A program made the position numbers and the translations under genes. Source: Lepidodermella squamata (Eukaryota; Animalia; Gastrotricha). From it: a stretch of 64,000 bases of DNA. The stretch covers positions 1,488,001 to 1,552,000 of the forward strand of contig JBLDXI010000013.1 in the NCBI GenBank assembly GCA_047495785.1, given 5' to 3'. This document shows, piece after piece, positions 6,435-64,000 of this stretch. Under the pieces are notes generated by a model. It was given only the letters and a program-made list of their open reading frames with translations. It did no database searches and was not told where the DNA came from. Each line of letters starts with the position of its first letter. Positions within the stretch are counted from its first letter, which is position 1.

Positions 6435-7537
6435 CTTCTAGTTCCGTTTTGCGCGTCTAAAAATATTGCGTGTAGTTTCTTATATTGATTGTTTCATTCA
6501 TATATTCACAAATTATTATCTGCGACCGCATCACCTCCACTCGAGTAAGCAACAACATTTCGGGAATAGTGTCATAAATTCATGCAACTTGTCGTATTTA
6601 CGTAAAATTAATGTTGTCCCAATATATTATTGTCCCAACTTATATACCCGCACAACAATTTGGAAGAGGGTGCAAAGGTAAAATGTATATAGGTCATGTT
6701 TACTAAGAATGCTCTCTCGGTGCCTTCCTCATACGAACTATATAAAAGCTTGTCTATGGTATAAAGCGCGGGATAATCTTGTAAAATATCAAGTCGAAGA
6801 TGAACTTGGCTGATTTCATCTATATTGCACGTGATGCTCTTCAGTCGTCTACATATTTTTCGAAATCTTTAACCTGACGAAACAAACTCGACGAAAATTT
6901 CAAAAGTTCTGTAAATAGCGGTAGCGTTTTTGTGTGTGTGTGTAATTTTGGCACAAAAGTTTCAGTCCTTGTCATCATGCTTAATCAACTTTCAGCTATA
7001 GAAGCTATTTCAAGTCGAATTAATTTTATATCGTTGTTGTGATGTTTACTACTACTACTACAATAAGCAGCGTGTGGCTGCGAAGGCTGTAAATATAAAT
7101 AAAGGCGTGGAAATTCTGCGGGGAGTTTCGAATCCTTAGAACTTCGTTGCTGGCCCGATTATTAGCTCAAACAATTAGTTCACATCAACACGGAAGCAAG
7201 CGAAGGGAAGTATCAATGATAAGTGCAATCGAATCGATTTTCTTCGCGATCGAGTGGCCGGCACACCTGCATGCAGCGTACCTGTACTTCGACCAGCGTA
7301 CTATACCGGCATAAATTTGTATATAGAATTGAGAAACTAAGCAACTACTACAGCTAATAACCAAAAAATGCTACGCTTTTCGCAGTTCGATATCAAATAA
7401 AAGCTAAATAGACTCTTCATTGATTATCGATACAGCACATTATGTGACTGTGGCAGCTCCACACGTGAATGCCAACTCACCGAAGCCACGCAAACTACAA
7501 CATCTTTTTCGCAGCTTGTTGATCTCTTGTTGGAAAT

Positions 7538-10500
7538 ATGTCTACAACTTCCCAGTATGCGCCTGATAAATTTGTCGCGAGGATTGCGTACTTTTACAAA
7601 GATGGCGACCAGCGCTTCAAGCCAGTTCGGATGGTCATTAATCAGAAGCAATATCCAACCCTCAACTCGCTGATTTTTGACCTGAATAAAAAAGTCCCGC
7701 TAGTCAGAGGCGTGCGGGCTATTTACTCGCCAGGCGGTCGCAGCCGAGTTTCGTCGATAGACGAGGTTTTAAATGAAGGTCAATACGTCTGCTCATCGAA
7801 TCTAGCTCAAGCTGCTGGGGTTGACGTAGACAACATGCAGTTGGACAAAATCCCTTGGCATGGCACGGCTGCTCCAGTGTTAAGTTACGCGGCTGAAGAT
7901 AGCCGTTTTCTTCGCACTGGCCTGCCCGAGTTTGACCCAAGCGACGATGAGATCGAAATTAACCCTTTGGTAAGTTAAATTGAATAATCGATTCTCAGGA
8001 AAAACCCGATTTATTCCAGAATGCTCGTGGTCGAATGGAAAAACTGCAAGAGCTGAGGAATTTCGAAGTTCGCCGGCACCAAGAGCGGGTTAGGCTGCAC
8101 AAAGATCCATCATGGGCCGATAAAATTCGTCGAATTACAGTCATCCGGAATGGTTACCCCGAAACAACAAAGCCATACACCTTAGCAATGACCAACGCCT
8201 ACAACCTTGCCAAAGTTAAAGCGGATTTATCCGAACTTTTCGCCTCACCAGTTGAAGCTGTTTATACTCTAAACGGCAGACAGGTATGATATTTAAGATC
8301 TTTGAAAAAGTTTTCTAAGCCAATTTTCAAAGATTCAAAGCGTGGATGATATGTTCGATTGTGGGGATTACGCTCTTGTAGCAACTTTCGGCGAGTCATT
8401 TCGGGCGAATTCGAAATACGCTCGTAGTCAACATATGGCGAACATGCCTCGAAAATTGCCACCACTTAATAGGAAAAACATGAGGTCCCCAGCATCCCTT
8501 ATCAGGCAGAAGACAAAGGTCCTAACGCCAAGTCAGCGGCGTAGTGAAGAGTACGACCGGCCCATAATTTCGCCGGTTTCTATGGGCCGGCATCGTAAGG
8601 CTCAGGTGAGGTCCAGGGCTCGATCCGCCGGCTCAAGGTCCAGCGGCTCGTCCAGTGACCAGGAAGAAAACAGAAGCAAACGTGGCGGGCTGCTTAAGCC
8701 GATGATGAGGGCGACTTTGCGGCCTCGGCGGGGTCAGAAAGCTGGTCAAAACTTGAAAGATAAGCGAACTATTGCCCGGTCTGAAATAGTTGAGACTAAA
8801 CGGCAAGCTGAGCCGTCTGTCATGCAGTCGTGGCCTAATCTTGGCCGAGGGGATGAATACTTATTACCGCCTGGTTCGCTACATCCGTCTAAACGTAGAG
8901 GCGATGACTATTTACCACCGGCACCAGCTACAGATCGAAGCAACAGCAAACGAACAACTCCTCTGCCACCTATCATCAAAAATCGGCGCGAAGCTCAGCA
9001 TAACGGAGGTTTAAAAAAAAATTCCCATAACTGACTTGATACAATTTATGTTCCTTTTTAGGCGATCAAGTTTGGAACGTTAAGATTGCAACAGGTACCC
9101 TGCAGTCGGCCTCTAGTTCTTCCGGTGTCATCCTAACTGCGTATGGTCATAAAGGCGCTTCTAAGCCGCAAGCCTTTGTTGCACCTAAAAAATACTTAAT
9201 CACAAATTCTTCAGAAAAATTCCAGGTAATTTTTTGTTTACAGCGAAATTCTACGTCATTCTGAGTTTCTAAAATTAGTGGAAGCTACCAAATATTGGCG
9301 ATATCTATAAAATCCGAGTTGAGATAAGCAACTCTGGTTCAAACCCTGATTGGCTCTGCGAGGAAATTACAATGGATAATCCGGTTACTAAGGAAGAACT
9401 GCGATTTCCGTGCCGAAAATGGTTCTCCGAGAAGCAGGGTGACAAGCAGATCATTCGAGAGTTACCCGCCTATTCTGATACTCGACCTCCGGTTGCTGTA
9501 TTTCAGTACGACGTTATCGTAAAAACAGGGGATCTTTGGAACGGCGGAACTCAGGGTACCGTGACTATGACTGTTTTTGGAGAACGGGGCGACACTGGGC
9601 CAAGGCTGCTATCAAAGCCTGTAGGAAGTTTGCCCGGAACGAAACCGTTCAGCAAGGGCCAGTCTGACGTTTTCCAGCTAGAATCAGTGAGTCTGGGCGA
9701 GATCAGGCGGATAAGGCTGAGCCATGAGCCTGCACCAAATGGTATGGGATGGTTCATCGAAAGCGTGACGATCCGTGACCGCATCGGTAATATTGACTAC
9801 CTGTTCCCGGCGAATCGATGGCTGAATCCTCAAGAGGACGACCGGTCTCTTGTTGCGGAATTTCGAGCCACGGATACGCACAACAGCATGAAAATCCAGG
9901 ACAGGCAAATATGGCCGTACCTGAAATGGATGTTCACGTTACGGGAGGCTGAACTGGTTTTCTACTCTAGCGTATCTCGCAAAGCGCTTCGAATGTAAAC
10001 TTGATTCAAAATTCTTCAAATTAACTAACGAATTGTTTTAGAACTGGCGGGGGATTTGTTGACGCAAGAGCTGAACAGATCGAGCGACTTGACGGCAGTG
10101 GCAAGTTTTTGCCTCAAAGATATTTATCGTTTGTTAAAATGCCATATAATTTTCAGCGGTTTTCTTCTACCGCAAAGGCGACGATCTCACGCAGGAGAAC
10201 ATCTACGCTCTTTGCACGGCATCTTCGAAGTCTCCCTCGTTTCTTGGCTTCAGCCACAAGAAAATCGTCTCGAAGAGCAATTATACACCTGGCTGCGATT
10301 TGCGCATTCATGTTTTTCCAACGCGGGAATTTGTTTTCGAATCCGAGAAATACCCTAGGTGAAATAGCCTATAATTCGTCTTTAAACTTTTTAATCATTT
10401 TGCTTTTTCAGCAATTTCGTCTCAGTGGCATCCAATGGCCAGCTTTATCCAGAAACTCAGGTGGTTGCGGCTCCAGGTCCGAGTCAGTCTTTCTACTGCT

Positions 10501-13500
10501 ACGTGAAAGGGTGTTTTCGAAACCAAGGCATTATAATGTTATGCACGTCGCTAATGCAAACTTTATGCATCGATCGGGATCCTTCAGCTTTGACTGCTAA
10601 TGGAAAACGCAACCGACTGGCTCAATTTCGCGTTCATAAAGTCAGCCCAGCTGGCATAAGGAAGTTCGAATCAGTCGTTTTTCCCGGGTGTTACCTTCAA
10701 ATGAAAAAAGGCCTCTGCAACTGTGAAGGTAATGGGGATAAGTACTGCGAATTCAAAGTCCGCCGGTGTCGCGAGTCAGGTTACGTTACGCTTGAATGCG
10801 CGAGAGAACGCGGCTTTTTAGGATTTTTGCCCAATGGATTCGTTCAAATTTTCTTCGACACTGTCTCGACCTCACCACAATGCCGCATCTATCCTGAAAT
10901 TGTCGAATGTAAGTCTCTCTGTATCCTCTCATAATGTAATTGTTATCATTATTTAACCAATAGTTGGAGAAAGGAAGCAGCACCGACTAGGCCCACAGCC
11001 TGTTAATAACGAAATGATAGCCAATGAGACTACCGAGAGGCGTCGTGACAGTTTCGAGGAGGTTAATCACAACGGCAGCGATCCCGATGACGATCTGAAC
11101 TCCGATGTGGATGATCTGTATCGCGATCGATATCGTGGACCGAAAGGTGCGAAAAAAGTGGTAACGAAACCGAAAGAAACTAAACCTCCGCCAGCAAAAG
11201 AGATGCCACAAGCAGCTCCACCTCCTCCACCGAAACCGAAGCCCGTTAAACCTAAACAGCGATCAGCAGACAGCGACGGAGAAAAGGATAAGGTGGAACC
11301 TCCTGCGAAGAGTTTGCCCAAGAAGCCGGAACCCCCACCGAAGCCACAAAAGACTGGTAAACTTGAATTAATCTTTTTACTTGACTTAAAATTAACTTTC
11401 CTTACTTAAGACGCCAAGCCAAAACCGGTTGCTGCGACCAACAAACAAAGCAAACCCTCAAGTAATTCGAAACTAGTCGCCAAGGAAGTGAAACCTGCAG
11501 CAAGTCCTGAAAAGCCACCAAAGCCTGCCGCGCCTAGCGAGAAACCCAAGAAGCCGGATTCAGCAAATATGATACCGAAACCGCCGCCCAAACCGCTTGC
11601 TCCTACTCTTATCCCAGAGGCCAAGTTCGATCCTAAGGCAGACTCTGAAGCGCTGAATAAGGTGCTATCGGCCAAGCCGAACGACAAAGAGGAGACAGCC
11701 AACGTACTAATGAACATTTTAGCGGACCGTTCTGCAGCTCAACGCGGCGAGATCAAGAAATGTTACAAAACCTTGACCGGAAAGGATTTGGATCTAACTG
11801 TTGGCAGTCTGGTCTCAGGAAACTTCTTCAACGTATTAGCTGCCTTATTGGTCAGCAATGTATCTACCATTGATTACTGCGTTCACCTGCTGAACAAGGT
11901 TTCATCTGGCCGAAAGGATATTGAGGCCCTGACAGATATAATCTGTACCACGCCTCATGCAGAGCTTCAAAAAATCAAGGAGCAATACCAAAAAAGTTAG
12001 TAACATTCATTGATTTTCAGGTAAAGAAGTTCCTATAATATATTCACAGCTTATGGCCACCCGCTTGAAACCGATGTGAAACCTGAGGATGATGACGATG
12101 AGACTGAGGAGAATTTTGCTGAAAGGCTGCTTACAAAGCTACTACGACGACCAGCCTCGCCGCCATCGGTGGATTATAATGCTGTAAAAGCCGATGCTAA
12201 GGGTTTAAACGATGCGCATAACCAGAGTGCAGCTAAAAGTACCGATTTTTCCGAGCATTTGGCTACACTATTAAGCTCAAAAGGCCATTTCGTCCTGCGC
12301 CAAATTTTTGACGCTTACAAGAAAGAATTCGGTTCCGAGATTGAAGACACAATTCGCTCTGAATGCTCCGGTCAAAATCAGACGTTTTTACTTGGTTGCG
12401 GTAAGCTATCATATAATTCTTTTGCTGAGTTAGGAACAACATTTTTGATGCAGTTGGCGCTATTAGGAATAAAGAGGAATACTTCGCCAAGCGGTTCCAA
12501 ATGGTTACTGTGACCGATAACGATGATGTGGCTCTGATTAGGCTGGTTGTCCTTAGATGCGAACTGGACCTTTCCGATATAAAACGGGAGTACGAGCGTT
12601 TATTCAAGAAACAGCTAAATAAAGCGATTACCGAGGAAACAACTGGTGACTACTGCGATATCTTGCTGAGGCTTGTTGAGGGCAATCGCGAGCCTCGTAA
12701 GCCTGTGGAAACAAAAAAAGTTGACAAAAATGTTAACGAGAAAGTTGAAGAGCATGAGACGCCCGCTCAAGCCCCGAAGATGGAAGAAAAAGAGCCCTCT
12801 GATCATCGACCAGTCGAGCAACCTAAAGACCCTGAAATTAAGCCAACTCCTTCGAGAATTACTGCTCCAACTTTATTGCCGGCGAAAAACTTCAATGCCG
12901 ATAAAGACGCCGCTAATTTGGTGAAGGCGATGGAAGTTGTAGAGGACGACGAAGAACCTCTCGTTTCAATTTTGGCCCGCAGAATTTTCATCCAGCGTGA
13001 ACAGATTGAAGCTGCTTATAAAAAAGCTTACAAAAAGGTTTTCGAAGTAAATCCTTTCTCTATTATCTTATGGTATTATCTTACAGAATTTCGACGACGA
13101 TATTGAGAAGGCCCTTGAGAAGGCGCCGCCTATATTTAGGCGAGCCATGCTGAAATACCTGGCCCCGCCCCACCAAACAGCGGCTAGGTATCTGAAAAAT
13201 GCTATCGACAATGATCCGATCGACAACGTCAACTCCTTGGAGTGTCTGGTTCAAATCATTTGCACGAGCACGCTTGCCGAACTTCAGCTTATAAAAGACG
13301 CATATGCTGGCTTGCCGAATGTTACTAACACCTTGAAGCAAGATCTGACAAGAGGTAAAGTTGGATTCATCGGCAACATTCTTGCATCATTCCTCAATCG
13401 TCCTGTCTCCGCGTAAGTCTTATCTAATTTCTTCGCTTAGCCTTCTTTGAGCTTAAAAATCGGCAAACAAGGTATCCGCATCAAGTGCAAATCCAACTGG

Positions 13501-15312
13501 CGAAGGAAGATGCTAAGAAGATTCATGATGACGTAGTCGTAAAGAAAATAGAAAAAAGCGAGGAGGTTTTCGAGACGCTTTTCTCCAGTCGAGGGAAAGG
13601 TCACATGCGAGCAGTGTTTCAGCTTTACGAGCATTTCTATAAGAAAACAATAGAAGAGGTAATCAAGGACGCTTACTCCAGCGATACCGAACGGGGTCTT
13701 CTGCTCATCGTGGCTGCGGTCAGAAATGAAAGTGCCTACAACGCCCGGTTGTTGCACACTTCACATGATGACGAAATTATTAGAATCGTTCTATCCCGGT
13801 GTGAAATCGATCTGGAGGAAGTCAAGAAAGACTATGAGCGACTCTACAATCGATCTTTGACGGAAAACGTGCAAGCTAGGATCGAGGAGCAGGCTGCTAG
13901 AAATTTCATTCTAGAACTTGTTGAGCCCACAGAAGGCGATATGAAAACTATTCGAGCTTCGGTTTCATCTGCGAAGAAATCTATCAGCCGAGAAAACACC
14001 CGACCAGTCAGCGTGAAGACTACCCATACAGCGATTGTGAAACAGCGACTTTATGAAGTCAGGCAAAAACATGTTGGAAAAGTGGAAGTACAATTTGCGC
14101 AATTAAAGATAACACTCAATCCTAATACATTATTTTATTAGCTTCGACATAGCCCGCCAAACATTCCAACTTTGGTCCCGGCTGCTGACTTCGATGCTGA
14201 TGCTGACTGCGAAAAGCTTCACGATGCTTTGCAAAAAACCGATATTGACGAAAATGATGTTATCGAAGTCCTGGCAAAACGATCGTGGAAACAACGGAAA
14301 GAGATCGAAGACCTTTACAAGAAGAAGTATGGTCAAAATCTCGAGCAAGCATTTTCGTCTTCCGAGGCCAACTTCAGCCAGCTCATCCTGGATTTACTTA
14401 AGCTTCCCGCTGAACTCGATGCGGCCGAGCTAAAGAAGTCATTTGACGAGGATGATGGCGAAGCTTTTGATAAAGCTGACCTCTATGATAACCTCTCGGA
14501 AATCCTATGCCCAGATACTGCAGAGGAATTGAAAGATCTGAAGCTTTACTACAAGAAGAGTGAGAAATGTTGCTAACTAGAAATATTCATTTTCTAGCTA
14601 CTTTTATTTGCAGCGTATTCCGTGGATCTAGAGAAGATGATAACGCAAAAAGTTACCAACAAGTTTCTTCGACTGTTTTTCCTCGCGATCCTGAACCGGC
14701 CCTCTTTCGTCAAGGAGAAACAATCCGACATACTTTCAAAGGCTAAAAAAGATGCGGAGAGACTAGTGAAAGCTGTCAATGGGAAGACATCAGAGGACGC
14801 TTTTCATTCGCTGATCATTGAAATTTTCACTAAACGATCACCATTGTTCTTACGGGCCGTTTTCGATCACTATGACGTTGATCCTAAATCCCTGACAATT
14901 GAAACTATTGAGGATGCTATATCAGCAAAGTTCAAGGAGGATGAAACAGCTTGTCATAGTTTGCTGGACTTTGGTAAACGAATTTTGAACAATATTTTTC
15001 TGTCTATGACCTGATTTTCTTACAGTTGAGATGACGAGGAGCTTGCACGCGTATTTTGCGTACCGGATGGAGCACACAATCTCAAGCTCGCACTACAACT
15101 GGTTTTCACGTGTCATCGTATCGCGGTGTGAGATCGATCTTGGCAATATAAAGGAAGAGTACATCCGGATCTTCGAGCGGACACTTGCCGATGACATAGA
15201 GGAAAAAACTAGCATCGATTATCGCAACGCTCTTCTCGCCCTTGTTAACGGCAATCAAGACGACGTTGTAGTAGAAAACGATGAGGAAGAAGAACACCAT
15301 GAATCCACTTGA
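7538..15312 (+). CDS. RP1-like multidomain protein: 2x doublecortin, 2x PLAT/LH2, 2x beta-trefoil-like, Pro/Lys-rich linker, three annexin cores (17 exons, ~2,299 aa)
   Basis: Exons 7538-7969, 8020-8283, 8333-9008, 9062-9225, 9279-9994, 10042-10100, 10157-10358, 10412-10908, 10964-11356, 11411-11995, 12050-12400, 12454-13037, 13087-13412, 13472-14057, 14142-14559, 14614-14973, 15026-15312 join in one frame (6,900 nt). DCX (FYKDGD..F...GVRAIYSPGG), PLAT (YDVIVKTGD..GTQG..FGERGDTG..FPANRWL), annexin (PTL.P...FD..AD...L; R..VSRCEIDL..IK.EY). Confidence 0.85.
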
Positions 15313-15443
15313 TGCATTTATAATAATCTTAAAAATTGTAGACAAAAATTTACACTATGATATGTTTTTGATCGATATTGTTACTATGTCTGAAATAAAA
15401 TTGCTGAAAAATTCGCAATCGACCTCAAAATTCAGCTATTTAC

Positions 15444-16757
15444 ATGGCTAATACCGTATTTATTGTAATTAAAAAGATCCGCGATGGTGCGATTAGGAAA
15501 CAGGCTGCTGAAATGTTGGTCAATGCAGTTGTTGAATTGACACGCTGGCTAGTAGAGGTAAGTTGAGCTAATCCTATATCACCTTGACTTCACTTTCTCT
15601 CAGGAGAAAAAATGCAATGTAATCATGGAAAAATGGCTCTATCAAGTAGTCACTGGAGGAGCAGCTGCTTTCAGTGCGAAAACAGTGGATCGAGTGGTGC
15701 CTTACCCGGGTGATAAAGATGGCTTCGCTGCTACTTTGCTAAGATCCCTAACCGATATCGTTGTTTGCATCGGAAACGATGATGCACTCATCTATGCAAA
15801 TTATCTGTTTCAAGAAAAACCAGCTCCACTTGTTTTGCCATTTCATGAGGGCTCTCTAGGTTTCTCGATGATATTGAGTTTGGACGATATCAGGCCGCGA
15901 ATCGTAGCTGCTTCCCTTGGAAGGCTGAAAACAACGGAAAGGACTCGCCTAAAATGCACTCTAATGTCATTTAGCAGAGCTAAATTTACAGCTGAGGAAG
16001 TCGAGGTGATGACTAAAGATGGATTAACCTCGAAGAATAAGAGTGCAGCAACCCCTGATAGTCATTACAACAAACAATTCTCAGTTGAATCACGAGAATT
16101 GCCTGCAAACTTAAAACGCCATCAAGAGGTAAGGGAATGGTCCTACAACGTCCTTAGTGAGGTGATCATCAGGCGCGGCCGCTCGCCCTACTTGGTCGAC
16201 TTGGAAGTTTTCGTGAATGATCAGTTTCTAACATTTGTCAAGGTAAAATTGGTTGTATTTGTTGAACCTTAGATTAAATGTTATCACCAGGCTGAAGGCT
16301 TGTTAATTTCTACTCCGACGGGTTCTACGGCTTACAATGCTACTTGCGGTGGTAGCATGGTCCATCCTTTATCCAAGGTCATTCTAGTAACACCAATACG
16401 TCCTTCTTCATCTTCACTCAAGCCGATAATATTACCTCAAGGTATTATTCGAAAAATGTCCCGATCTCTTATAAAAACGTGTTAATTTTAGATTCAACGA
16501 TTCTCATAAGATCTACACCATCCAGGAACGCTTCAGAAGTCGTTGATGCGCACATCAGTTTCGACGGGCGTCACAAGTTTTTGTTTGAGGCTGGCGATCA
16601 GCTGAAAGTCTCGAGGGCTGAACGGTCTATAATTACAGCCAATTGCAACCAGGCTCATGAAAATTCCAAAAATATAGCCGATTGGGCAACATCACTTGCT
16701 CACAGTCTTCACTGGACAGAGTCGGATGTTGATCTTAGTTCGTTTTTCAAAAAATAA
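15444..16757 (+). CDS. NADK: NAD kinase family protein with divergent motifs (4 exons)
   Basis: Exons ~15444-15557, 15604-16242, 16291-16441, 16493-16757. Motifs FHEGSLGF, VLSEVIIRRG, EGLLISTPTGSTAY..GGSMVHP..TPI, SFDGR. The GGDG motif reads GNDD. Confidence 0.85.
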
Positions 16758-17025
16758 TAATAAACTGCCTGGTATATTAATACGAGCCTTCAACTTTATT
16801 TTACTTCGGTGATCGTTTAATTAATTAATTATGAGAAAAGTATAATGAGTAACCAGCGAGCATGATTTCCCCCACCGACATGGAGACATAAAAAGACAAA
16901 ATTAAGGACGATTTTTGCGGTTTTGCGTGATTTTCGAACTTTCAATGGTCGTCGTAAATAGCACGGTCTGTTTCTTCCTCAGCGCTGATCAACAAATCGA
17001 TGCCTCTCCGGCGCAGGCAGACTAG

Positions 17026-18109
17026 TCAGGTCGATTTTTTCATACCAGACTGCTCCCAGCGGCACTCGCTCGCCACCTGGTAGCAGGCATGCACCATTTT
17101 CATGTCGTAGGGCGTTACAGGGTGGACAAGAATCTGCGGCGTTTTCATCGTCGCCATTTTACACAGCGTTTCAATGTCGTGGCGAATATTCCTATTATCG
17201 CGCTCGTCCAGAATCAACTTGACCTGATCTTGCGGCATTGGTACTACGTCGACCGAACCTGAAATTGCTAAATGAACCGAAACGTAGACCTCTTCAAGCG
17301 GGAAAGGCTGCATAGCTGTTGCCCCGCAACGAAGCTTAGAATGCGTAGATCCCGAGAACATGTAACCGGCTCGGAAGCAGTGTTGAGGGTAAGCCTCGTA
17401 TTTGAACAGATCTTTCGAAACGTAGAACTTGGAGTTTTGATCTCGAACGACCTTGACCCCGTCAACAACAGGGCAAAACAGGAAGTGGCGCTTATCAGAC
17501 CCGCGTTCTTTTTCAGTCTGCTTGAACGCTTCAATAGCTGCTTGAACCTGCAAAATTTTAGTTGAAAAATCGGGTATATATGGCGAAAAATATTACGTTA
17601 GCGTAAACATCGTCATTTGTCTTCAGGATGAAGAGTCGAGCTTGAGACGGTCTGCCGAAGAAGCCGAGCGAATGCTGTTGATAGATCCATTCCAGCATGA
17701 GACTGGCCTTATCAGCCCGGAAGCGGTAGTCTTCATCGCCCTGGAAAACCAGCAAATCCCAATGATTTCTTTGCTCGACGTGCAACATATGGGCATAAGT
17801 TCCGTTATCGCGATCTGACTCGCAGCGGTCAACGCCGGTTACGATGAAAAACGGCCCGAAAGCGTTGGCTTTTTTCATCAACTCAGGCCTGCCCCACGTT
17901 TCGCGGATAGCCTGGCGAAGTTCGAAGTTGCGAAGCTGCGAGAAAACGACTACAACCGTTGTAATTTTCGGATCTCGCCTTGTTGGAGCTGCAGTGGCTT
18001 CGGTGACGTCGGAAGAATTGGTAACCTGCGCCGGAACAACCGTTGTTGTCTCGGTTTGGGCAGAGGCGATAGAAATCAGCGCTACGACGAGGAAGAACGG
18101 CTTCAACAT
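17026..18109 (-). CDS. GT31 (beta-1,3-galactosyl/GlcNAc-transferase-like) glycosyltransferase, 2 exons
   Basis: RQAIRETWG, ILKTNDDVYAN, YPQHCFRAGYMFS, FPLEEVYV match GT31 motifs. N-terminal hydrophobic signal and Thr-rich stem; ~46-bp intron near 17550-17596. Confidence 0.85.
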
Positions 18110-19272
18110 TGCTATAGTGTGCTATTTACTCCTTAAAAACCCAATCGCATTTTGTGGTGAACAACGCCCCGTTTTCGCCGCCTTAAAAAGTGTTTCTTGA
18201 CATTTTTACGACTCGTCGTTTATTTTTCGAAGATTACACGCAAAAATTTATCATCGGCGGGCTTTTTATCCATGCCGTCGTTCGAAACATCTGCGCAATT
18301 ACCTGGTCGGTTTTTCGTGTGTTTTTTTACGTCTACCATTCGGTGAATTGTATGTTTGTTGGTGTTGGGAACTAAAAAATTAAGATTGATGGGAATATGG
18401 ATATATGATGCAATATAATAACCATATAAAACTTGTGCATTTTTATGGCGGGGCTACTACCCGGCCGATGTAGTGTAATGAAGCAGGCGCGAAAAAACCT
18501 TGCAGTTTTATACCGCAAGCAACGCGCCTTTTGTTTGTTATCAGAGGCAGAAGCGCGCTCTTCAACTGGCAGGCGCGGTTATTTCCCGCCGTTGCCCTGC
18601 GTGAATAGGCGTTTTTGTTTATCGTAAAACGATAACAAATCGTCATCACCCGCGTAGGATTATGAAGCTAAAAAGGCATAAATAATATAGCCATTTAGCC
18701 AATGAGTAAAAAATACTGTCTATTCGGAGATATATTCAGACATTTTTCTCATGCTAGAAAATAACCGCTTAAAAAACGTGCTTTCCTATACGCGATCATC
18801 ATGACTTTAAAATACGTAAGTTATTCTTTCCATTTTTTTACCCATAATTTTATGCTGGGCGATGGTTGTCTCTTGCTTTTGCGCGATAAGCTCTGTGCTG
18901 GCATAAATTCGATAACTTACCGGCCCGTTAGCGATAAAATCACTGCGCGAAAATGACCCTCGTGGGGCGCGCGGCGACTCGCAACCATCCACTTAACGAC
19001 CAAAAAAACAAAAACCTCCAGAATAATTATTCCAATATCACTAAAAACACGCCGATTTATTCTATAAATTATTGCTTACACGATAAAAATGTTTTCCGCG
19101 TTAAAATTGAGGGCATTTCACTTGCAATCTGTGATGCGTTAAATTCATATTAATTTTTCGCAAGTTGTTTGGTTGCACTTGCGGTGCTAGAAAAACTGTT
19201 CTTTCCTCATATATAGCCACGCGGTTTTTTTATCAAGTGATCTGTTGATAATTGTTTTGCTATTATTCAATT

Positions 19273-56181: not shown

Positions 56182-58250
56182 TTATTCATTTTCATCACTA
56201 GCTGGGCAGCATTCATGGACAATAACCACGCCTATCAGATCAAAGTAATAAAATTCGGACAGTTTTTCGACGCGGATGTCAAGGCTGCTCAGATAAGTTC
56301 CGTTTGGCCGGTTACACATGACTGAATTTGATGTTTCATTGCCGACGCCTCGGCCTTCTTCCATTAGCGGCGCGAATGGAAGGTACTGAATGACATTATT
56401 CACAGCGGAATACGGGTGCATTTCACCTACTATCCTAGCCCATCGGTATTGCTGAGTTACATTTGTTTCTCTATGCGTAAAGTTCGTTTTGACATCGATT
56501 GCCAGCTCACCCCTGGTCTCGCTATCAAGTCGCACACCGCAGTATTTACACGTGACAAACGCCAGGGCAAGATGGGGTATAGCCGGCCGAGAGCCGCAAA
56601 TCGCCGTCGTATTACCCAGGTCCGATTGCGGCAATCGAAACTGAACATAAGCCGGCAGTTTTTCTCTCAATTCGTAGTACATGAGAAGGTCGAGGTTTGA
56701 GCGGCGACCGTCGTCGTATATAAGATTGTAGCCAAGACTTGCGAAATTGTCATCGCCTCTGACCGGTTGCGTGTCGATCCTAGTTTTCGCTAAGCGATCA
56801 CTTGCTTTAAAAGGCCGTTTGAAAGAAATGAAGCAGTCGATATCTACGACTCGTTTTGATTTGGTGAAGAAGAAATTATCGGGCAGCGGGAAGTCCTTTT
56901 TCAAAGCCTCAATCGCATCATCACTCATGTCTACACGATCGTTGGCTAGGCGTCGAATTAGCCGGTTAATCGAGGTTCGAACGTAGTTGATCAAGAAATC
57001 TGCCATGATTAGATGCGCTAGGGCGGATGGATGGTAGTTGTCCGTTGAAGAAAATAGGTCAAGCATCAGCTTCGCATTCGGCGCGTCGACTTCATCACAG
57101 AAAATTTGCTTCCACCCAACAGCTGGTACCTGGTAATGCTTGACTACAGGTAGGTAAATGTCGTCCGTAGATTCGCATCGCTTTTGCGTCGAAAAATCTT
57201 GCCGTGGGCTGAACAATTTCGCGATGTAAGGACTGTTCATCATAATGATGTGAACGTCCGGATTTATTCGCCAAACACTTCGGAAAAGCTCCTCCAAATG
57301 CCGACCCGCGTCGTAGCTGGTTTCGTAACCAGGCAGCTTGTTGTCATAGGCTGACGCGTCGTTAACCGCAAATTCAACAAGCAGCAGGTCAGTTTCGTTC
57401 AGGTTCACGAATTCTTGCAAGCAAACAGAGAAGAATTGGCTAGCTGTACCGCCGATTGCCGCGTTTTTGTATTCCACGGACAACCCGACTTCTTGGAGTG
57501 CTGTTTCCAGCCACTGGTGGAAGACTTCGATGTAAGACAAGTATCTCTATTCATGAAGAAAAATTGCTGAATTATAGGGGTACTTGATATGAAAAGCAAA
57601 GCTTTTACCGGCATAGCAGTTCCGACTGTTATCGATCCTCCAACTGCAACAACTCTAAGAGCGTTCTTACTTGGAAGACCAGCTCCGCCGCCGTTGTATT
57701 TCTGCCTTACTTTCCTGGTTATCATTTTCAGCAGGGTATGATCCAGTCTGAGTTGATCGCCTCGGTATTGAAGTGACCGATTGGCTAACCGGAAGGTGTA
57801 GTCTGCCATGGGGGCGTAGTTAATAATTCGCTCAAGATCTCTACGCACCAACTGCTGCAGAATCTCGTCATCGAGTGGCGAAGGGGTTGAGCTGGTGGTG
57901 GTCGATTGTTGGGTTGTCGTTGCTCCGGGGTCTATCCTAGTCGTCGGCTGCTCCTTTGTCGCAAGCGAGAAAGATGATAATGGCGTAGTTGACCTATTTT
58001 CCGAGTAATAAGCCGCTGATTCACTGCCGAAGTTTTCTCGCGATAATTTTATCGACTGCAAGGTTGGCTGGGGAGTGGTTGAACTTATGGCTTTCGTTGT
58101 AGAATTTCGCCTTTCAGTCGACGCCTGTGTTGAGTACGTCCACGTAACGACGGGTGAGGTTTGTTGTTCTTGCGTGGTAGTTCCATCGCCAATAACAAAG
58201 CTGATAGCGAGATAAAGGCTGGCAATAATTATGCACAAATTAGGCGTCAT
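56182..58250 (-). CDS. SGNH/GDSL hydrolase family protein with signal peptide/anchor and Thr-rich stem (2 exons)
   Basis: Block I VVAVGGSITVG, block II KNAAIGGTAS, block III LLVEFAVND, block V DNYHPS (DxxH). Intron at ~57547-57608. Confidence 0.88.
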
Positions 58251-58554
58251 CAACTCTGCTTGCTTATATAAGCCCGTACAGCAAACAGGTAGAATGGTGT
58301 GCAAAAAATTATTGTAGAACGTGCGGTCAATAAAAGTAGTGTTTAGTAAATGCTAATTCTCCCCTTGTTGTTACAAACACGAATCTTGTGCGGCTATTAC
58401 TGCCCTGATAATGCCCGCGTATGTGCCGGCCATTGGAGCCGTGAAATACTAGCTAAACCCAACGACTGAGCACGGCCACGCTTCGCTCGAGTCGACTTTA
58501 CACGGGCGCGATGGGAGACACGAGATTATATATAGACGAGAAGCTGGCACTACA

Positions 58555-58838
58555 ATTACTTTGAGAGCCGCATATGAATTAATTCGACACCTGTGTGATA
58601 AAATAAATCAAGATGATGCACCGATTCAGCTTTATTTCAAAATTATTGTCGTTTCCCTCTATTCTTCCTGTTCTTACTTCATTAGAACGGAATTCGCGTT
58701 CAACGATTGAGTCCGGACCTCCGACCTCCGCGACGAATGGCTAATTTGCGAAGCTGGTCTACCACCACGAGGAAGAAAGCGAAAGGCCTCGCAATTAGCC
58801 ACCAAAAACCGGAAATTGGAGCCATCAAAAATCTTGTT
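58555..58838 (-). pseudogene. Orphan, frameshifted copy of the last exon and 3' UTR of the P2C ATPase
   Basis: Aligns by eye with 62588-62860. Reads [36 protein letters not shown], then a 7-bp duplication (GGAGGTC) shifts the frame. Confidence 0.85.
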
Positions 58839-58982
58839 CAAGATTAAGTGAAATTACTCTGAATGTTGTAAAAGTAATTAGGTACCTTCGACATTAATTC
58901 CTGGACATTGGCAAAGCAAAACTGCAATTTCAAAAACATTTCAAATATCTTTTAGCGGATCAAATTTAATCAAATTTAACTC

Positions 58983-59852: not shown

Positions 59853-61490
59853 CTATGATCTAGCAGATAGACGCTGTCTCGCATCACCACTCGGTCTGTT
59901 CAACAACTGTCCTTGGTCTGATAGATTATTCTCATCCGCTTCGTCCGCCGTACGCCATCGACGCCGTTTCTCGAAGAAAAATATAATACCAAATAGGAGG
60001 ATAACCTCGCCACAAATTCCCAGCAAAGGCCAAAGTGCAGCAAATTTATCTATTAGAAATACAGTGAGATGATAGCTAGAGAATGGTGTTGATAATATAC
60101 CTTTTACTCGAATCTGATAAGTAGTGAAAGCTTCAGTATTTTCGCTTGAACCAGTGACAGAGACATTATAAACTCCGGCTTCACTCTGCAATGCCGGATC
60201 GAGAACGATCTCGACCACCATGTCTTCAAATATGCATTGGGCCTGAAATTCAAAAATATATAAACGTATTTTTGGCAATAGATTATTTACAAACCTTCAC
60301 TTGATCTTTGTTAGCTGTAGCAGGCAGATCAACGCGACACTGCGTGAATGGCCAGCCGTAAACCTGGCATCGGAAAACACATCGGCTACCTGCGACACAG
60401 GTAGATCCGGAAGTAAGAGAGCACTTTCTAACTTGAATTCCGGTTGCTGTTCAAAGACAAATAATCATTCCAACTTGTTATGGTATCATGCTGATTTTGC
60501 AAAATTACAATAAAAATCAATGTAAGAAGTGGTTTGTATTACACCTCGTTCCATTGGACTTTCGCTAGGCTTCATCAATATGCACCTAAATCGACCAGCC
60601 AGTTTTAGAAGCGCTTCCTCTGCGGCTGCCTCTCCGATGGGAATAACTGTTGGTAAAGGGAACTATACTTTAAACCTGGACACTATTGAAATTCCTCCTA
60701 CCCAGAGATGCAGTTGAGCAGATGAGAGCTTCTCCTGGGCCAGGAACAAAAGCTTCACAAGAAGTAGTCAAACCGTTGAAAATAGCTGGAGAGGTTAGCG
60801 GCAGATCTAAGACTGTTGTAGCAGTACCTACCAAGTTGTTATCTCTCGGTAGTGCAAATGCGCAAGTCATGTTCGGTTGAGATTTCGTTGGGGGTGCTTT
60901 GAGCACTGTGAAATGAAGTGAAATATATCAGCGAGGTTTTTTGAGTTTGAAATACCTCGGATGACGGTCCAACTGCGCGAAGCATTAGCATCACCGGCAC
61001 ACTTAGCAGTTAACTGACCGGTAGCAGTCAAAACAACGGTAAGGTTCACTGTTGAGTGAAATTCATCGAAGTTGGAAAGTTTGTTGACTATGGCCATGTT
61101 TCTCAGCTCTATTGCTGGTCCATTGGCAAGTCTTTGCTGATTAACCAAGTTCACTTCGATCTTAGAATTTCCAGCTGAATGCTGCAGAGTGAACACGGCT
61201 GCAGAACCAGCCGGCTGCGATTTTGCTGAAAGAAGTTGAGATTTAGAGCTGGAAAATTTTCAAAATGGTAATACATTTCACGACACAGCTGATATTGAAA
61301 GATTCATCTTTAATCAGTAGAAGATAGTTTGGCTGGATAGTAATAGTGGCAAGGCCATCACTTCCGGAGACTGCTGAAATTATGGAATGCTATAATGTCA
61401 CAATAGTAAACAGCGACGCAATTACATACTGCATATATTAAAGTAGGCCCAGAATAGGAGCTGAACACCAGAATAAAGTGTTAAATGCAT
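59853..61490 (-). CDS. Basigin/neuroplastin-like Ig-superfamily single-pass membrane protein (multi-exon)
   Basis: Diagnostic TM AALWPLLGICGEVILLFGIIFFFEKRRR with intramembrane Glu; degenerate Ig strands (EAGVYNVSV, AGRFRCI); N-terminal signal-like exon. Confidence 0.8.
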
Positions 61491-61574: not shown

Positions 61575-62250
61575 ATTTACTGTCTTCGTAGATAAGGTTG
61601 TAGCCAAGATCTAGTAAACTGACCGGTTGTTTATCAATTCTAGTCGTCTTTAAAAGGCCATTTGGAAGAGATGAAACAGAGTCGATAGCTACGGCTCTTT
61701 TTGAATAATTATGCACTAATTAGGCGTCATTAAATCTGCTTGCTATAGATCCCACATTCAACAAACAGGTAGAATAGTCAGCAAAAATTGATGAAACGTG
61801 CGGTCAACAAAAGTGGTTGGTGTTACTAACACGAATCTTGTGCGGCCAAAGTACCGGCAATGTGCCGGCAATGAGAGCCGTGAAATACTACCAAAATCCA
61901 GCGTTCAAAATAGCCGGAGAGGTTGGCGACAGCTCTACAAGACTACCCTAGCAGTACCTAATAAAGCATTATCATGTGGTAATATGGAAAATGCCAGACC
62001 ATGTTCATTTCAGATTTCGTTGGGGCTGCTTTGATCACTGTCAAGTTGAATTGTTGTGCAAATTTAAAATAACAGCGAGGTTCTTTGAATTTAAAATACC
62101 TCGGATATCGGATAAAGCCAACCATTGGTGGAATATTTCGATATAATAAGGCAAAGCTCTCTATTAATGGTGAAAAAGGCGGAATGATGGTTTGTGTGAA
62201 AACCAAAGTTTACCGGCATAGCAGTGCCGACTGTTATCGATTCTCCAATA
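61575..62250 (-). pseudogene. Scrambled relic of duplicated SGNH and basigin-like gene fragments
   Basis: 61575-61700 matches ~56710-56860; 61704-61890 matches 58225-58450; 62000-62107 matches 60868-60962; 62198-62249 matches 57590-57643. Confidence 0.8.
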
Positions 62251-62710
62251 CAGGGTGTTCATATGTAGCGCGCACATAAACCTGCGGCAAATGTTAAGGC
62301 ATTATATGGTTTATGCGCTATTGAATTGCGTATTGAAGGCATACCTATGAAATGTGCTATAAGCGATATGTTTGATATGTTCATAACCGCACGTAACACA
62401 ACAACAAAACTTCCGGAGTAGGTATACGCCCCAGAAATGTGAATATCACTAAGACTCTGATGTTAGCTCTGATTTATTTCTTGCATTCAGGTAACCTCAA
62501 ATAAAGGTGAAAAAATAAAAAGATCCTGTTCGCTGATCAAAAATAGACTAAATAAATTGATATAAATTGATTGTTTCATTCGTATTTTACTTTGAGAGCC
62601 GCTTATGAATTAATTCGACACCTTTGTGAAAAAAATGAGGTAAATACACCGATTCAGCTTTATTTCAAAATTATTGTCATTTCTCTCCATCCTTCCTGTT
62701 TTTTACTTCA

Positions 62711-64000
62711 TTAGAATAGGAATTCGCGCTCGCCGAATGAGTCCGGACCTCCACGACGAATTGCCAATTTGCGCAGCTGGTCAACTACCATAAGGAAGAA
62801 AGCGAATGGCATCGCAGGTAGCCACCAAAAACCGGAAATTGGAGCCATAAAAAATCTTGTTTGAAAGTATAGGTCTTTATGAATATTTGCCCTCGAGATA
62901 AAGGTACTTACGCATCATTGATTCCAGGACAGTAACAGAGTAAAACTGCGATTGCGGTTTCGAAAAACATTCCGAAGAAAAGGTAATGGTTTCTCCCTTA
63001 AAACAAGATGAAAGTAATGCAAATTGAAGTTGGCAAACATTCTTACAGCCTTGATGGAACATTGACGATCTTCGTGTCTTGCACATTACGACACAAATCC
63101 ACTGCATTTCGACAATAGCGAGAAAGTATACTGAGTAGAGAGTTCTTTCAAGATGCTTTCGCTGCGAATAACTCCACTCTTGGCCGTAACTGTCCTCCAA
63201 ATCGTTTAGGCCTTTTGCCAATTAAAATCAGTAGAAAAAAGTTAGGATTGCCGTGAACATAGCTTACCTGGGCAATCCCAGCGGTCGGAAAGAGAGAATA
63301 TGTCCGAAAGTCTGAAACCATTTTCCGTCAAGCAGACAATGTAAGCCATAAAAGCTGCTGCTGCCTCAATCACTCCATTCTGCCCTAATAATGAAAACGG
63401 CAAACAGAAATGGGAATTGGAAAATTCATGTTGGAACCCACCGTAAGCTACTGACATCATTCGTCCTGTAATCATGGTATCTTTTTTGGGGTTCCGAGGC
63501 TTCCTATGCATTATATCTGATTCCGCGTGTTCGTAAGCCAACATAACCGCTTTGAAATTTTGAATTAGGACAGACTATATAGGAAATTTATAAAGCTAAA
63601 ACCTGGCGCCATGTCTGTGACCAAGCATATCACCAGCATAGCAATAGTGCCCATCGGTAGAGGAATTTCAAGAACAACGTAGGAGAGAGCAGCGGCAATT
63701 TGCGGAATATTCGCAACCAAAATGTAGCAAACCGTTTTTTTGAGGTTATCAAACAACAACCGACCCTCTTCGATAGCGAATACAATCGTTGCAAAGTTGT
63801 CGTCCAGCAAAATCATATCAGCAGCTTGCTTCGAGACATCTGACCCGGTGATACCCATAGCGATGCCTATATCGGCCTGTTTTAGAGCCGGCGAGTCATT
63901 CACCCCATCTCCAGTAACCGCCACGACGTTTCCGCTACGCTGGAAACCCTCTACGATTAGAAGCTTTTGCTGCGGAGAAGTGCGAGCAAAAACGATTTCC
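62711..64000 (-). CDS. P2C-type (Na,K/H,K-ATPase alpha-like) ATPase, 3' part only, with non-canonical ion-binding residues
   Basis: [103 protein letters not shown]. Last exon ends ...GEREFLF* at 62711. The 5' part lies outside the window. Confidence 0.93.

Follow-up and report, generated by a model that had tools for sequence, protein, structure and literature searches.

A transcribed type IIC P-type ATPase alpha-chain gene with an altered cation pocket in the gastrotrich Lepidodermella squamata

At its high-numbered end the window, i.e. the whole stretch of 64,000 nucleotides that was analysed, encodes on the minus strand the C-terminal 338 residues of the alpha chain of a type IIC P-type ATPase, obtained by joining six exons in a three-frame translation. 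The joined frame of 338 codons is open and ends ...GEREFLF-TAA, with the stop codon TAA at 62711-62713, and its five introns of 53, 57, 56, 50 and 56 nt are all of the GT..AG type, with splice acceptors (AAAG, TTAG, TAAG and CAAG) unlike the nematode TTTCAG type. The gene extends past the window end at 64000; the visible part runs from the P-domain hinge to the C-terminus, and M4, DKTGT and TGES lie upstream of it. Contigs of three public runs from separate studies, designated X1 (2024), X2 (2015) and X3 (2014), were aligned to positions 62400-64000 of the window, and residues are numbered as in pig alpha1. The features of the gene, in the direction of transcription, are the following.

63603..64000, minus strand: exon 1 (partial, frame from 63999), with the P-domain hinge FARTSPQQK...TGDGVND, M5 and M6; X2 contigs span it and continue past 64000
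63895-63912, minus strand: GDGVND of the hinge in exon 1, from the translation
63700..63726, minus strand: M5 cation-site segment YILVANIPQ, aligned ungapped by phmmer to PDB alpha chains; X2 record 11, 0 mismatches
63613..63627, minus strand: M6 cation-site segment C-L-V-T-D; X2 record 10, 0 mismatches
63625-63627, minus strand: Cys804 codon TGC
63613-63615, minus strand: Asp808 codon GAC
63442..63549, minus strand: exon 2, end of M6 and the L6-7 loop, close to canonical; junction 63549/63603 seen in X2
63268..63384, minus strand: exon 3, M7; junctions seen in X2 and X3
63047..63211, minus strand: exon 4, M7-M8 loop and M8, then CKTRRSS; X2 record 7 and X3 record 15, 0 mismatches
63174-63191, minus strand: SYGQEW beta-subunit motif in exon 4, from an ungapped alignment
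63093-63110, minus strand: EMQWIC of M8 in exon 4
62912..62996, minus strand: exon 5, M9; junctions seen in X2 and X3
62711..62855, minus strand: last exon, M10 and the C-terminal tail; covered by X2 record 6 and X3 record 14
62714-62728, minus strand: C-terminal REFLF, from the translation
62659..62664, minus strand: AATAAA poly(A) signal, about 50 nt past the stop; RNA-derived contigs begin at about 62687-62694

In X1, a genome run that is probably the source of the assembly, contigs are contiguous over the whole stretch, one of them extending about 800 nt beyond 64000, and the joined, intron-less form is absent, while contigs of X2 skip all five introns exactly at the predicted positions (CT..AC on the plus strand) and those of X3 skip two of the five, also exactly. 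Hence, the visible pump gene is transcribed and spliced as modelled, and a retrocopy does not account for the joints, because X1 has no joined form. The X2 contigs are at least 99% alike in 15 of 16 cases, with 0 mismatches in the listed pieces, and the codons for Gln779, Cys804 and Cys926 are covered without mismatch (X2 records 7, 10 and 11; X3 record 15). As independent contigs match at these three codons, the unusual residues are not assembly errors; on expression level and tissue the contig evidence is silent. An earlier note, made from the letters of the window, had called the splicing intact, which is borne out by the exact removal of introns in RNA-derived contigs of two studies; the range of 62711-63780 that it gave for the pump covers only a subset of the gene, since 62711 belongs to the stop codon, 63780 falls within exon 1 and the gene continues beyond 64000. 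At 63927 and 63954, within the P-domain exon, two X2 contigs diverge into unrelated sequence, one of them with an in-frame stop in its continuation and the other reading GMTIAFAFLP, which is M10-helix-like and in a shifted frame. These breaks may represent chimeric contigs through paralogous transcripts or rare aberrant splicing.

The neighbourhood of the gene contains further traces of related and repeated sequence. At 58530..58910 on the minus strand lies a degenerate duplicate, 86% identical, of part of the pump gene's 3' region. It comprises the last intron and exon with the adjoining tip of exon 5, as well as the 3'UTR and AATAAA, and a 7-nt insertion (CGGAGGT) in it leads to a premature stop after ...RRGGRRSGLNR. 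Just downstream of the pump gene, positions 61700-62250 form a non-collinear mosaic of repeats of 40-46 nt, 84-95% identical, with matches at 57604-57643, 58224-58464 and 60868-60967 in neighbouring genes, and this arrangement suggests repeated local rearrangement. The neighbouring gene at 59853-61400 on the minus strand encodes a putative single-pass membrane protein with the hydrophobic stretch LLGICGEVILLFGIIFFF followed by basic residues, for which a search of Pfam gave no match. Domain matches of the other open reading frames of the window are limited to PLAT, annexin, galaxin, GDSL and PQQ-propeller.

Assignment of the pump to its family relied on ranking profiles by bits, the whole-protein cut-off of the type IIC profile TIGR01106 being out of reach for a fragment of one exon. 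On the exon of 132 aa TIGR01106 scored 223 bits, as compared to 141 for the PMR1-type, 135 for the SERCA and 126 for the IID profile, and the best PDB matches were ATP1A1-4, ATP4A and ATP12A. A heavy-metal pump of the P1B type is not indicated, with IB profiles at 71-99 bits. The hinge sequences FARTSPQQK, which fits the phosphate-binding pattern FARxxPxxK, and TGDGVND are present and aligned, LEDSYGQEW in the short M7-M8 loop aligns without gaps to LEDSYGQQW of ATP1A3 and provides the beta-subunit motif, and the L6-7 loop, CKTRRSS and the layout of M5-M10 are retained. Judged from these profiles and motifs, the gene of which the window carries the 3' half is real and encodes a type IIC (Na,K/H,K-like) alpha chain that depends on a beta subunit. 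Conservation was assessed with a set of 212 P2C fragments having Asp804, in whose first 165 residues 56 sites are at least 95% conserved. The window sequence is changed at four of the 56 (E779Q, P782A, D804C and L837M), having kept 49 of 51 conserved non-pocket sites as against 3 of 5 pocket sites, Asp804 being conserved in the set by construction. Since two of the four changed sites fall among the five pocket sites and two among the 51 others, chance is not an issue.

The cation pocket itself was compared by running the three informative exons with phmmer against all PDB chains, whereby Na,K-ATPase alpha chains were the best matches, followed by H,K-ATPases, and M5, M6 and M8 aligned without gaps. 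The differences from the canonical sequence are as follows.

M5: window YILVANIPQ, canonical YTLTSNIPE; Y771, T772I, L773, T774V, S775A, N776, I777, P778, E779Q (codon CAA)
M6: window VICLVTD, canonical CIDLGTD; C802V, D804C and G806V, with T807 and D808 kept
M8: window VEMQWIC, canonical VVVQWAD; V921E, V922M, A925I and D926C (codon TGT), with Q923 kept
M9: window FFETA, canonical FEETA; E953F, with E954 kept
C-terminal tail: window EREFLF, canonical E(K/R)ETYY; YY replaced by LF

Additional changes are A770C and P782A/F783A. Nineteen residues, including six key carboxylates, form the Na+-bound pocket (PMC5233988); 13 residues of that list are visible in the window and six of them are changed. 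Neutralisation affects three of the five visible carboxylates (E779Q, D804C and D926C), the sixth lying outside the window, and the oxygen ligands T774 and S775 have become Val and Ala, with a new Glu at 921. Among the site I/II ligands Ser775, Glu779, Asp804 and Asp808 only the last is kept. Na+ site III, which in the sodium pump is supported by the C-terminal Tyr-Tyr, is altered by D926C, T774V and the tail EREFLF, with Gln923 and Tyr771 kept. The pocket retains no carboxylates other than Asp808, Glu954, the new Glu921 and, upstream of the window, possibly Glu327. Taken with the conservation counts, the cation pocket is, on this alignment, selectively rebuilt while the scaffold is kept. What the earlier note had read from the letters stands, and its hedged interpretation, a P2C paralog with a rewired pocket that probably cannot perform canonical 3Na/2K exchange, is supported, the point on exchange being based on established mutagenesis. 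Its assignment to the P2C type agrees with the profile scores (223 vs 141 bits) and the Na,K- and H,K-ATPase alpha chains as best PDB matches, the hinge around GDGVND is indeed near-perfect, and the description of the gene as maintained is supported for the visible part by the open six-exon frame, the exact splicing and the 49 of 51 non-pocket sites. All the residue changes it reported were found correct, namely T774V, S775A and E779Q in M5 (ungapped PDB alignment, unambiguous codons), D804C with D808 kept in M6 (ungapped PDB alignment, codons TGC and GAC), the new Glu with D926C in M8 (VVVQWAD vs VEMQWIC) and REFLF in place of KETYY (ERETYY vs EREFLF), while T772I, A770C, C802V, G806V, P782A/F783A and E953F had been overlooked.

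Relatives of the gene were sought in several ways. Among 5.8 billion protein clusters, the best match had 77% identity over the most conserved exon. An exhaustive search of representatives with exon 1 gave no close relative; its scores were dominated by the conserved P domain, and its top matches of about 73% were mostly canonical or protist pumps. A metagenome scan for related loci, made with generic patterns, gave 73% as the best match, and L076, a contig of a human-gut metagenome assembly that it yielded, was left out of the analysis; no exact record of the 100-aa ORF of the window itself was found, and a feature search of the ESM Atlas returned generic HAD or ATPase clusters only. Word searches with the M8 exon gave no candidates at 30-95 aa and three at 63-200 aa, all having Asn926 and none Cys926, one of the three coming from the springtail Allacma fusca. 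The nearest group (P0151, P0153, P0155, P0156, P0164 and P0225) consists of fragments from metagenomes and Logan assemblies that read ...KKCICYLL[TA]AN[IV]AE... and ...LICLGTD..., with A770C, a hydrophobic residue at 772, S775A and D804C in common with the window. Genes of these relatives lie on L001, L082, L083 (where two stand in tandem) and L084 and are interrupted by short introns; none of the four loci has lost TGES or DKTGT, and M4 with VANVPEGL is seen on L001, L082 and L083. Their M8 reads VVCQW[GSA]N or VLCQW[TA]N, i.e. Cys922 and Asn926, residue 804 is Cys or Gly, and the tail ends in EFYY where it is visible. The genes on L001 and L084 are orthologs, since an ATG3-like downstream neighbour is common to both.

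The metagenome contig L083, of 70 kb, bears its tandem pump genes at 7300-11950 and 14100-19000, one with Gly804 and one with Cys804, and both have Cys922 and Asn926 together with intact TGES, PEGL and DKTGT. A partial protein of the springtail Allacma fusca (P0286) has the M8 sequence VLMQMAN, with Met922 and Asn926, and the tail EEFYT, which indicates that alpha-like paralogs without Asp926 occur also in, or with, hexapod assemblies.

Among the relatives themselves synonymous sites are saturated and dN is 0.02-0.15, with an omega of 0.013 for L082 vs L086, so by these estimates pumps without Asp804 and Asp926 are under strong purifying selection; in every comparison of the window gene with a relative, too, such sites are saturated. 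A phylogeny of 81 rows and 146 columns, of limited resolution and built after the trait columns of M5 and M6 had been taken out, places the window in a set of 26 animal-type rows (SH-aLRT 98), which includes canonical pumps with nematode and rotifer names, and within it inside a sub-group of ten rows exclusively without Asp804 (SH-aLRT 85). An AU test of the placement, run on an earlier tree trimmed of columns other than those intended, was uninformative (p 0.30). There is moderate support for the window belonging to an older animal-type group of pumps without Asp804 and Asp926. The loss of these two residues would then be the older, constrained state, to which the lineage of the window appears to have added E779Q, G806V, V921E, N/D926C and the loss of the terminal tyrosines. 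The combination of Cys804, Cys926 and Gln779 was present in no other sequence found and in no paper searched, and the literature searched contains no P2C pump described as having Cys804 or Cys926.

Cys804 is also present in unrelated protist-type P2C-like clusters (P0023/P0242, P0040, P0098/P0107 and P0123), some of which have a very long M7-M8 insert, and it needs at least four origins on the tree. Across the 81 sequences in which both positions are readable, Asn926 accompanies Cys804 in four rows of four (P0023, P0040, P0098 and P0123), while Asp926 accompanies Asp804 in 42 of 75, counts that are phylogenetically non-independent. The animal-type genes follow the same rule. In the protist-type pumps, Cys804 with Asn926 may be a convergent alternative pocket. 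Each change from Asp to Cys takes two nucleotide substitutions, and Gly804 and Asn926, as found in relatives, are possible intermediates.

In the sodium pump, K+ occlusion requires Asp804 and Asp808, K+ affinity is set by Ser775, and Na+ site III owes its affinity to Asp926 and the C-terminal tyrosines. When Asp804, or Glu820 as its counterpart in the H,K-ATPase, is neutralised, ATP is hydrolysed independently of K+, and Asp808 is the counterpart of the single essential proton-binding Asp in plasma-membrane H+-ATPases. Set against this background, the window gene is best read as encoding an active non-canonical pump, with a rough probability of 0.6, that probably moves fewer or different cations and does not carry out 3Na/2K exchange. 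Phosphorylation cycling would be retained, the visible half of the P domain being intact, whereas neither the occlusion of 2 K+ nor the binding of a third Na+ would be expected, and with them electrogenic 3Na/2K exchange would be lost. What this would leave is a pump with a lower stoichiometry that relies on Asp808, Asn776, Gln923 and presumably Glu327 of M4. A K+-independent mode, in which one or two small cations (Na+ or H+) would be exported with little or no K+ counter-transport, is proposed because Na,K- and H,K-ATPase mutants with a neutralised Asp804 hydrolyse ATP without K+; this specific mode is offered tentatively, as the likeliest way in which such a pump could work.

With three of the five visible pocket carboxylates gone, it could be argued that ion transport has been lost and that the protein serves as a scaffold for signalling, beta-subunit assembly or regulation. 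This is unlikely, as the hinge for phosphate and Mg2+ and the L6-7 coupling loop are almost unchanged, which would be unexpected were catalysis dispensable, and as the relatives without Asp804 keep TGES, PEGL and DKTGT under strong constraint. A decaying duplicate, in the form of an expressed pseudogene with its defect upstream of the window, is a still less probable reading: the 5' half does lie outside the window, the degenerate 3'-end copy 4 kb away speaks for a duplication-prone locus, and the X2 contig breaks at 63927 and 63954 are odd, but the 338 open codons in six exons with perfect splice sites, the exact splicing of transcripts and the retention of nearly all conserved non-pocket sites are hard to reconcile with decay, and the changes are multi-step and partly common to constrained relatives.

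The window has C770, C804, M922 and C926, and its relatives have C770, C804 and C922. This recurrence of sulfur on pocket-facing turns raises the question of a soft-ligand site, whether for the transport or sensing of a thiophilic metal ion (Zn2+, Cd2+ or Cu+) or as a redox gate. Such a site is compatible with the several independent origins of D804C among P2C-like pumps and with the two substitutions that each Asp-to-Cys change required, by way of possible Gly804 and Asn926 intermediates. Yet similarity to P1B profiles is weak (99 vs 223 bits), M4 of the relatives has PEGL and not a CPC-type motif, and Cys may be merely a tolerated small neutral residue. Such a site is thus very improbable, and just as doubtful is the wider proposal that a P2C pump has turned into a thiol-lined transporter or sensor as part of a recurrent solution, with Asp804 replaced by Cys and Asp926 lost, in protists and small animals. 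That the protein is still a Na,K-ATPase, compensated by the new Glu921, an acidic residue two positions before Gln923 in M8, together with the retained Asp808 and Glu954 and with Y771, N776, T807 and Q923 also kept, is hardly credible given that replacement of Asp804 abolishes K+ occlusion and that Asp926, Ser775 and the C-terminal tyrosines set affinities, that five such changes coincide in the window, and that residue 921 would, by helical periodicity, lie on another face of the helix than 923 and 926.

Ion counting and selection in the sodium pump centre on Asp804 and Asp926; laboratory mutants at these positions are crippled, and changes at the equivalent of Asp926 cause human neurological disease. 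The interest of the active non-canonical pump proposed here lies in its being a natural, expressed protein with Cys at both 804 and 926 along with further coordinated changes. Pumps of this kind could reveal what the P2C scaffold is capable of with a minimal or sulfur-containing site, be it a different stoichiometry, K+-independent export or another substrate, and could serve as a natural test case for current models of site III and the C-terminal pathway. As far as sequence comparison goes, it is the composition of the pocket that appears new, while P2C alpha-like paralogs as a kind were already known.

SERCA-like pumps have the M6 sequence NLVTDG (WVNLVT[DE]G in P0007 and P0116), and CLVTD of the window resembles it in being neutral at 804 with Val at 806. 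However, the SERCA profile is far weaker on the window (135 vs 223 bits), and a Ca2+ site is not rebuilt, because Gln and Cys stand where SERCA has Glu771 and Glu908. H,K-ATPases (ATP4A and ATP12A) and Artemia alpha2KK (8K1L), which are among the PDB matches, are P2C pumps whose stoichiometry is altered via the same pocket. In them a lysine at the position of Ser775 or of an Asn fills a site, and the carboxylates of M6 and M8 are kept; ATP4A and ATP12A are marked by Lys at the Ser775 position and Glu at the Asp804 position. By contrast, the window has Ala775 and Cys804, no added Lys, and has lost carboxylates. C. elegans likewise has extra type IIC alpha-like genes, CATP-1 to CATP-4, beside its canonical pump, and for the divergent paralog CATP-1 a non-pumping role is documented (Ruaud and Bessereau 2007, as cited in a passage of PMC11631496).

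Animal Na,K-ATPase alpha chains (ATP1A1-4; 3WGU, 3B8E, 2ZXE and 8ZYJ) are the best matches, ungapped over the hinge and the M5-M10 helices, and have in common with the window TGDGVND, the L6-7 loop, SYGQ(E/Q)W, CKTRR, Y771, N776, T807, D808, Q923 and E954, whereas the window departs from them in T772I, T774V, S775A, E779Q, D804C, G806V, V921E, D926C and the change of YY to LF. The unnamed pumps without Asp804 (P0151/P0153/P0155/P0164; L001, L082, L084-L086 and the L083 pair) have 72-77% identity to exon 1. Unlike the window, they have kept Glu779, Gly806 and, where seen, the terminal YY, and carry Cys922 and Asn926 without Glu921. Common to them and the window are a hydrophobic residue at 772, S775A, D804C (Gly in one), the lack of Asp926, SYGQEW and short introns, with A770C common to the window and the P0151-type clade only.
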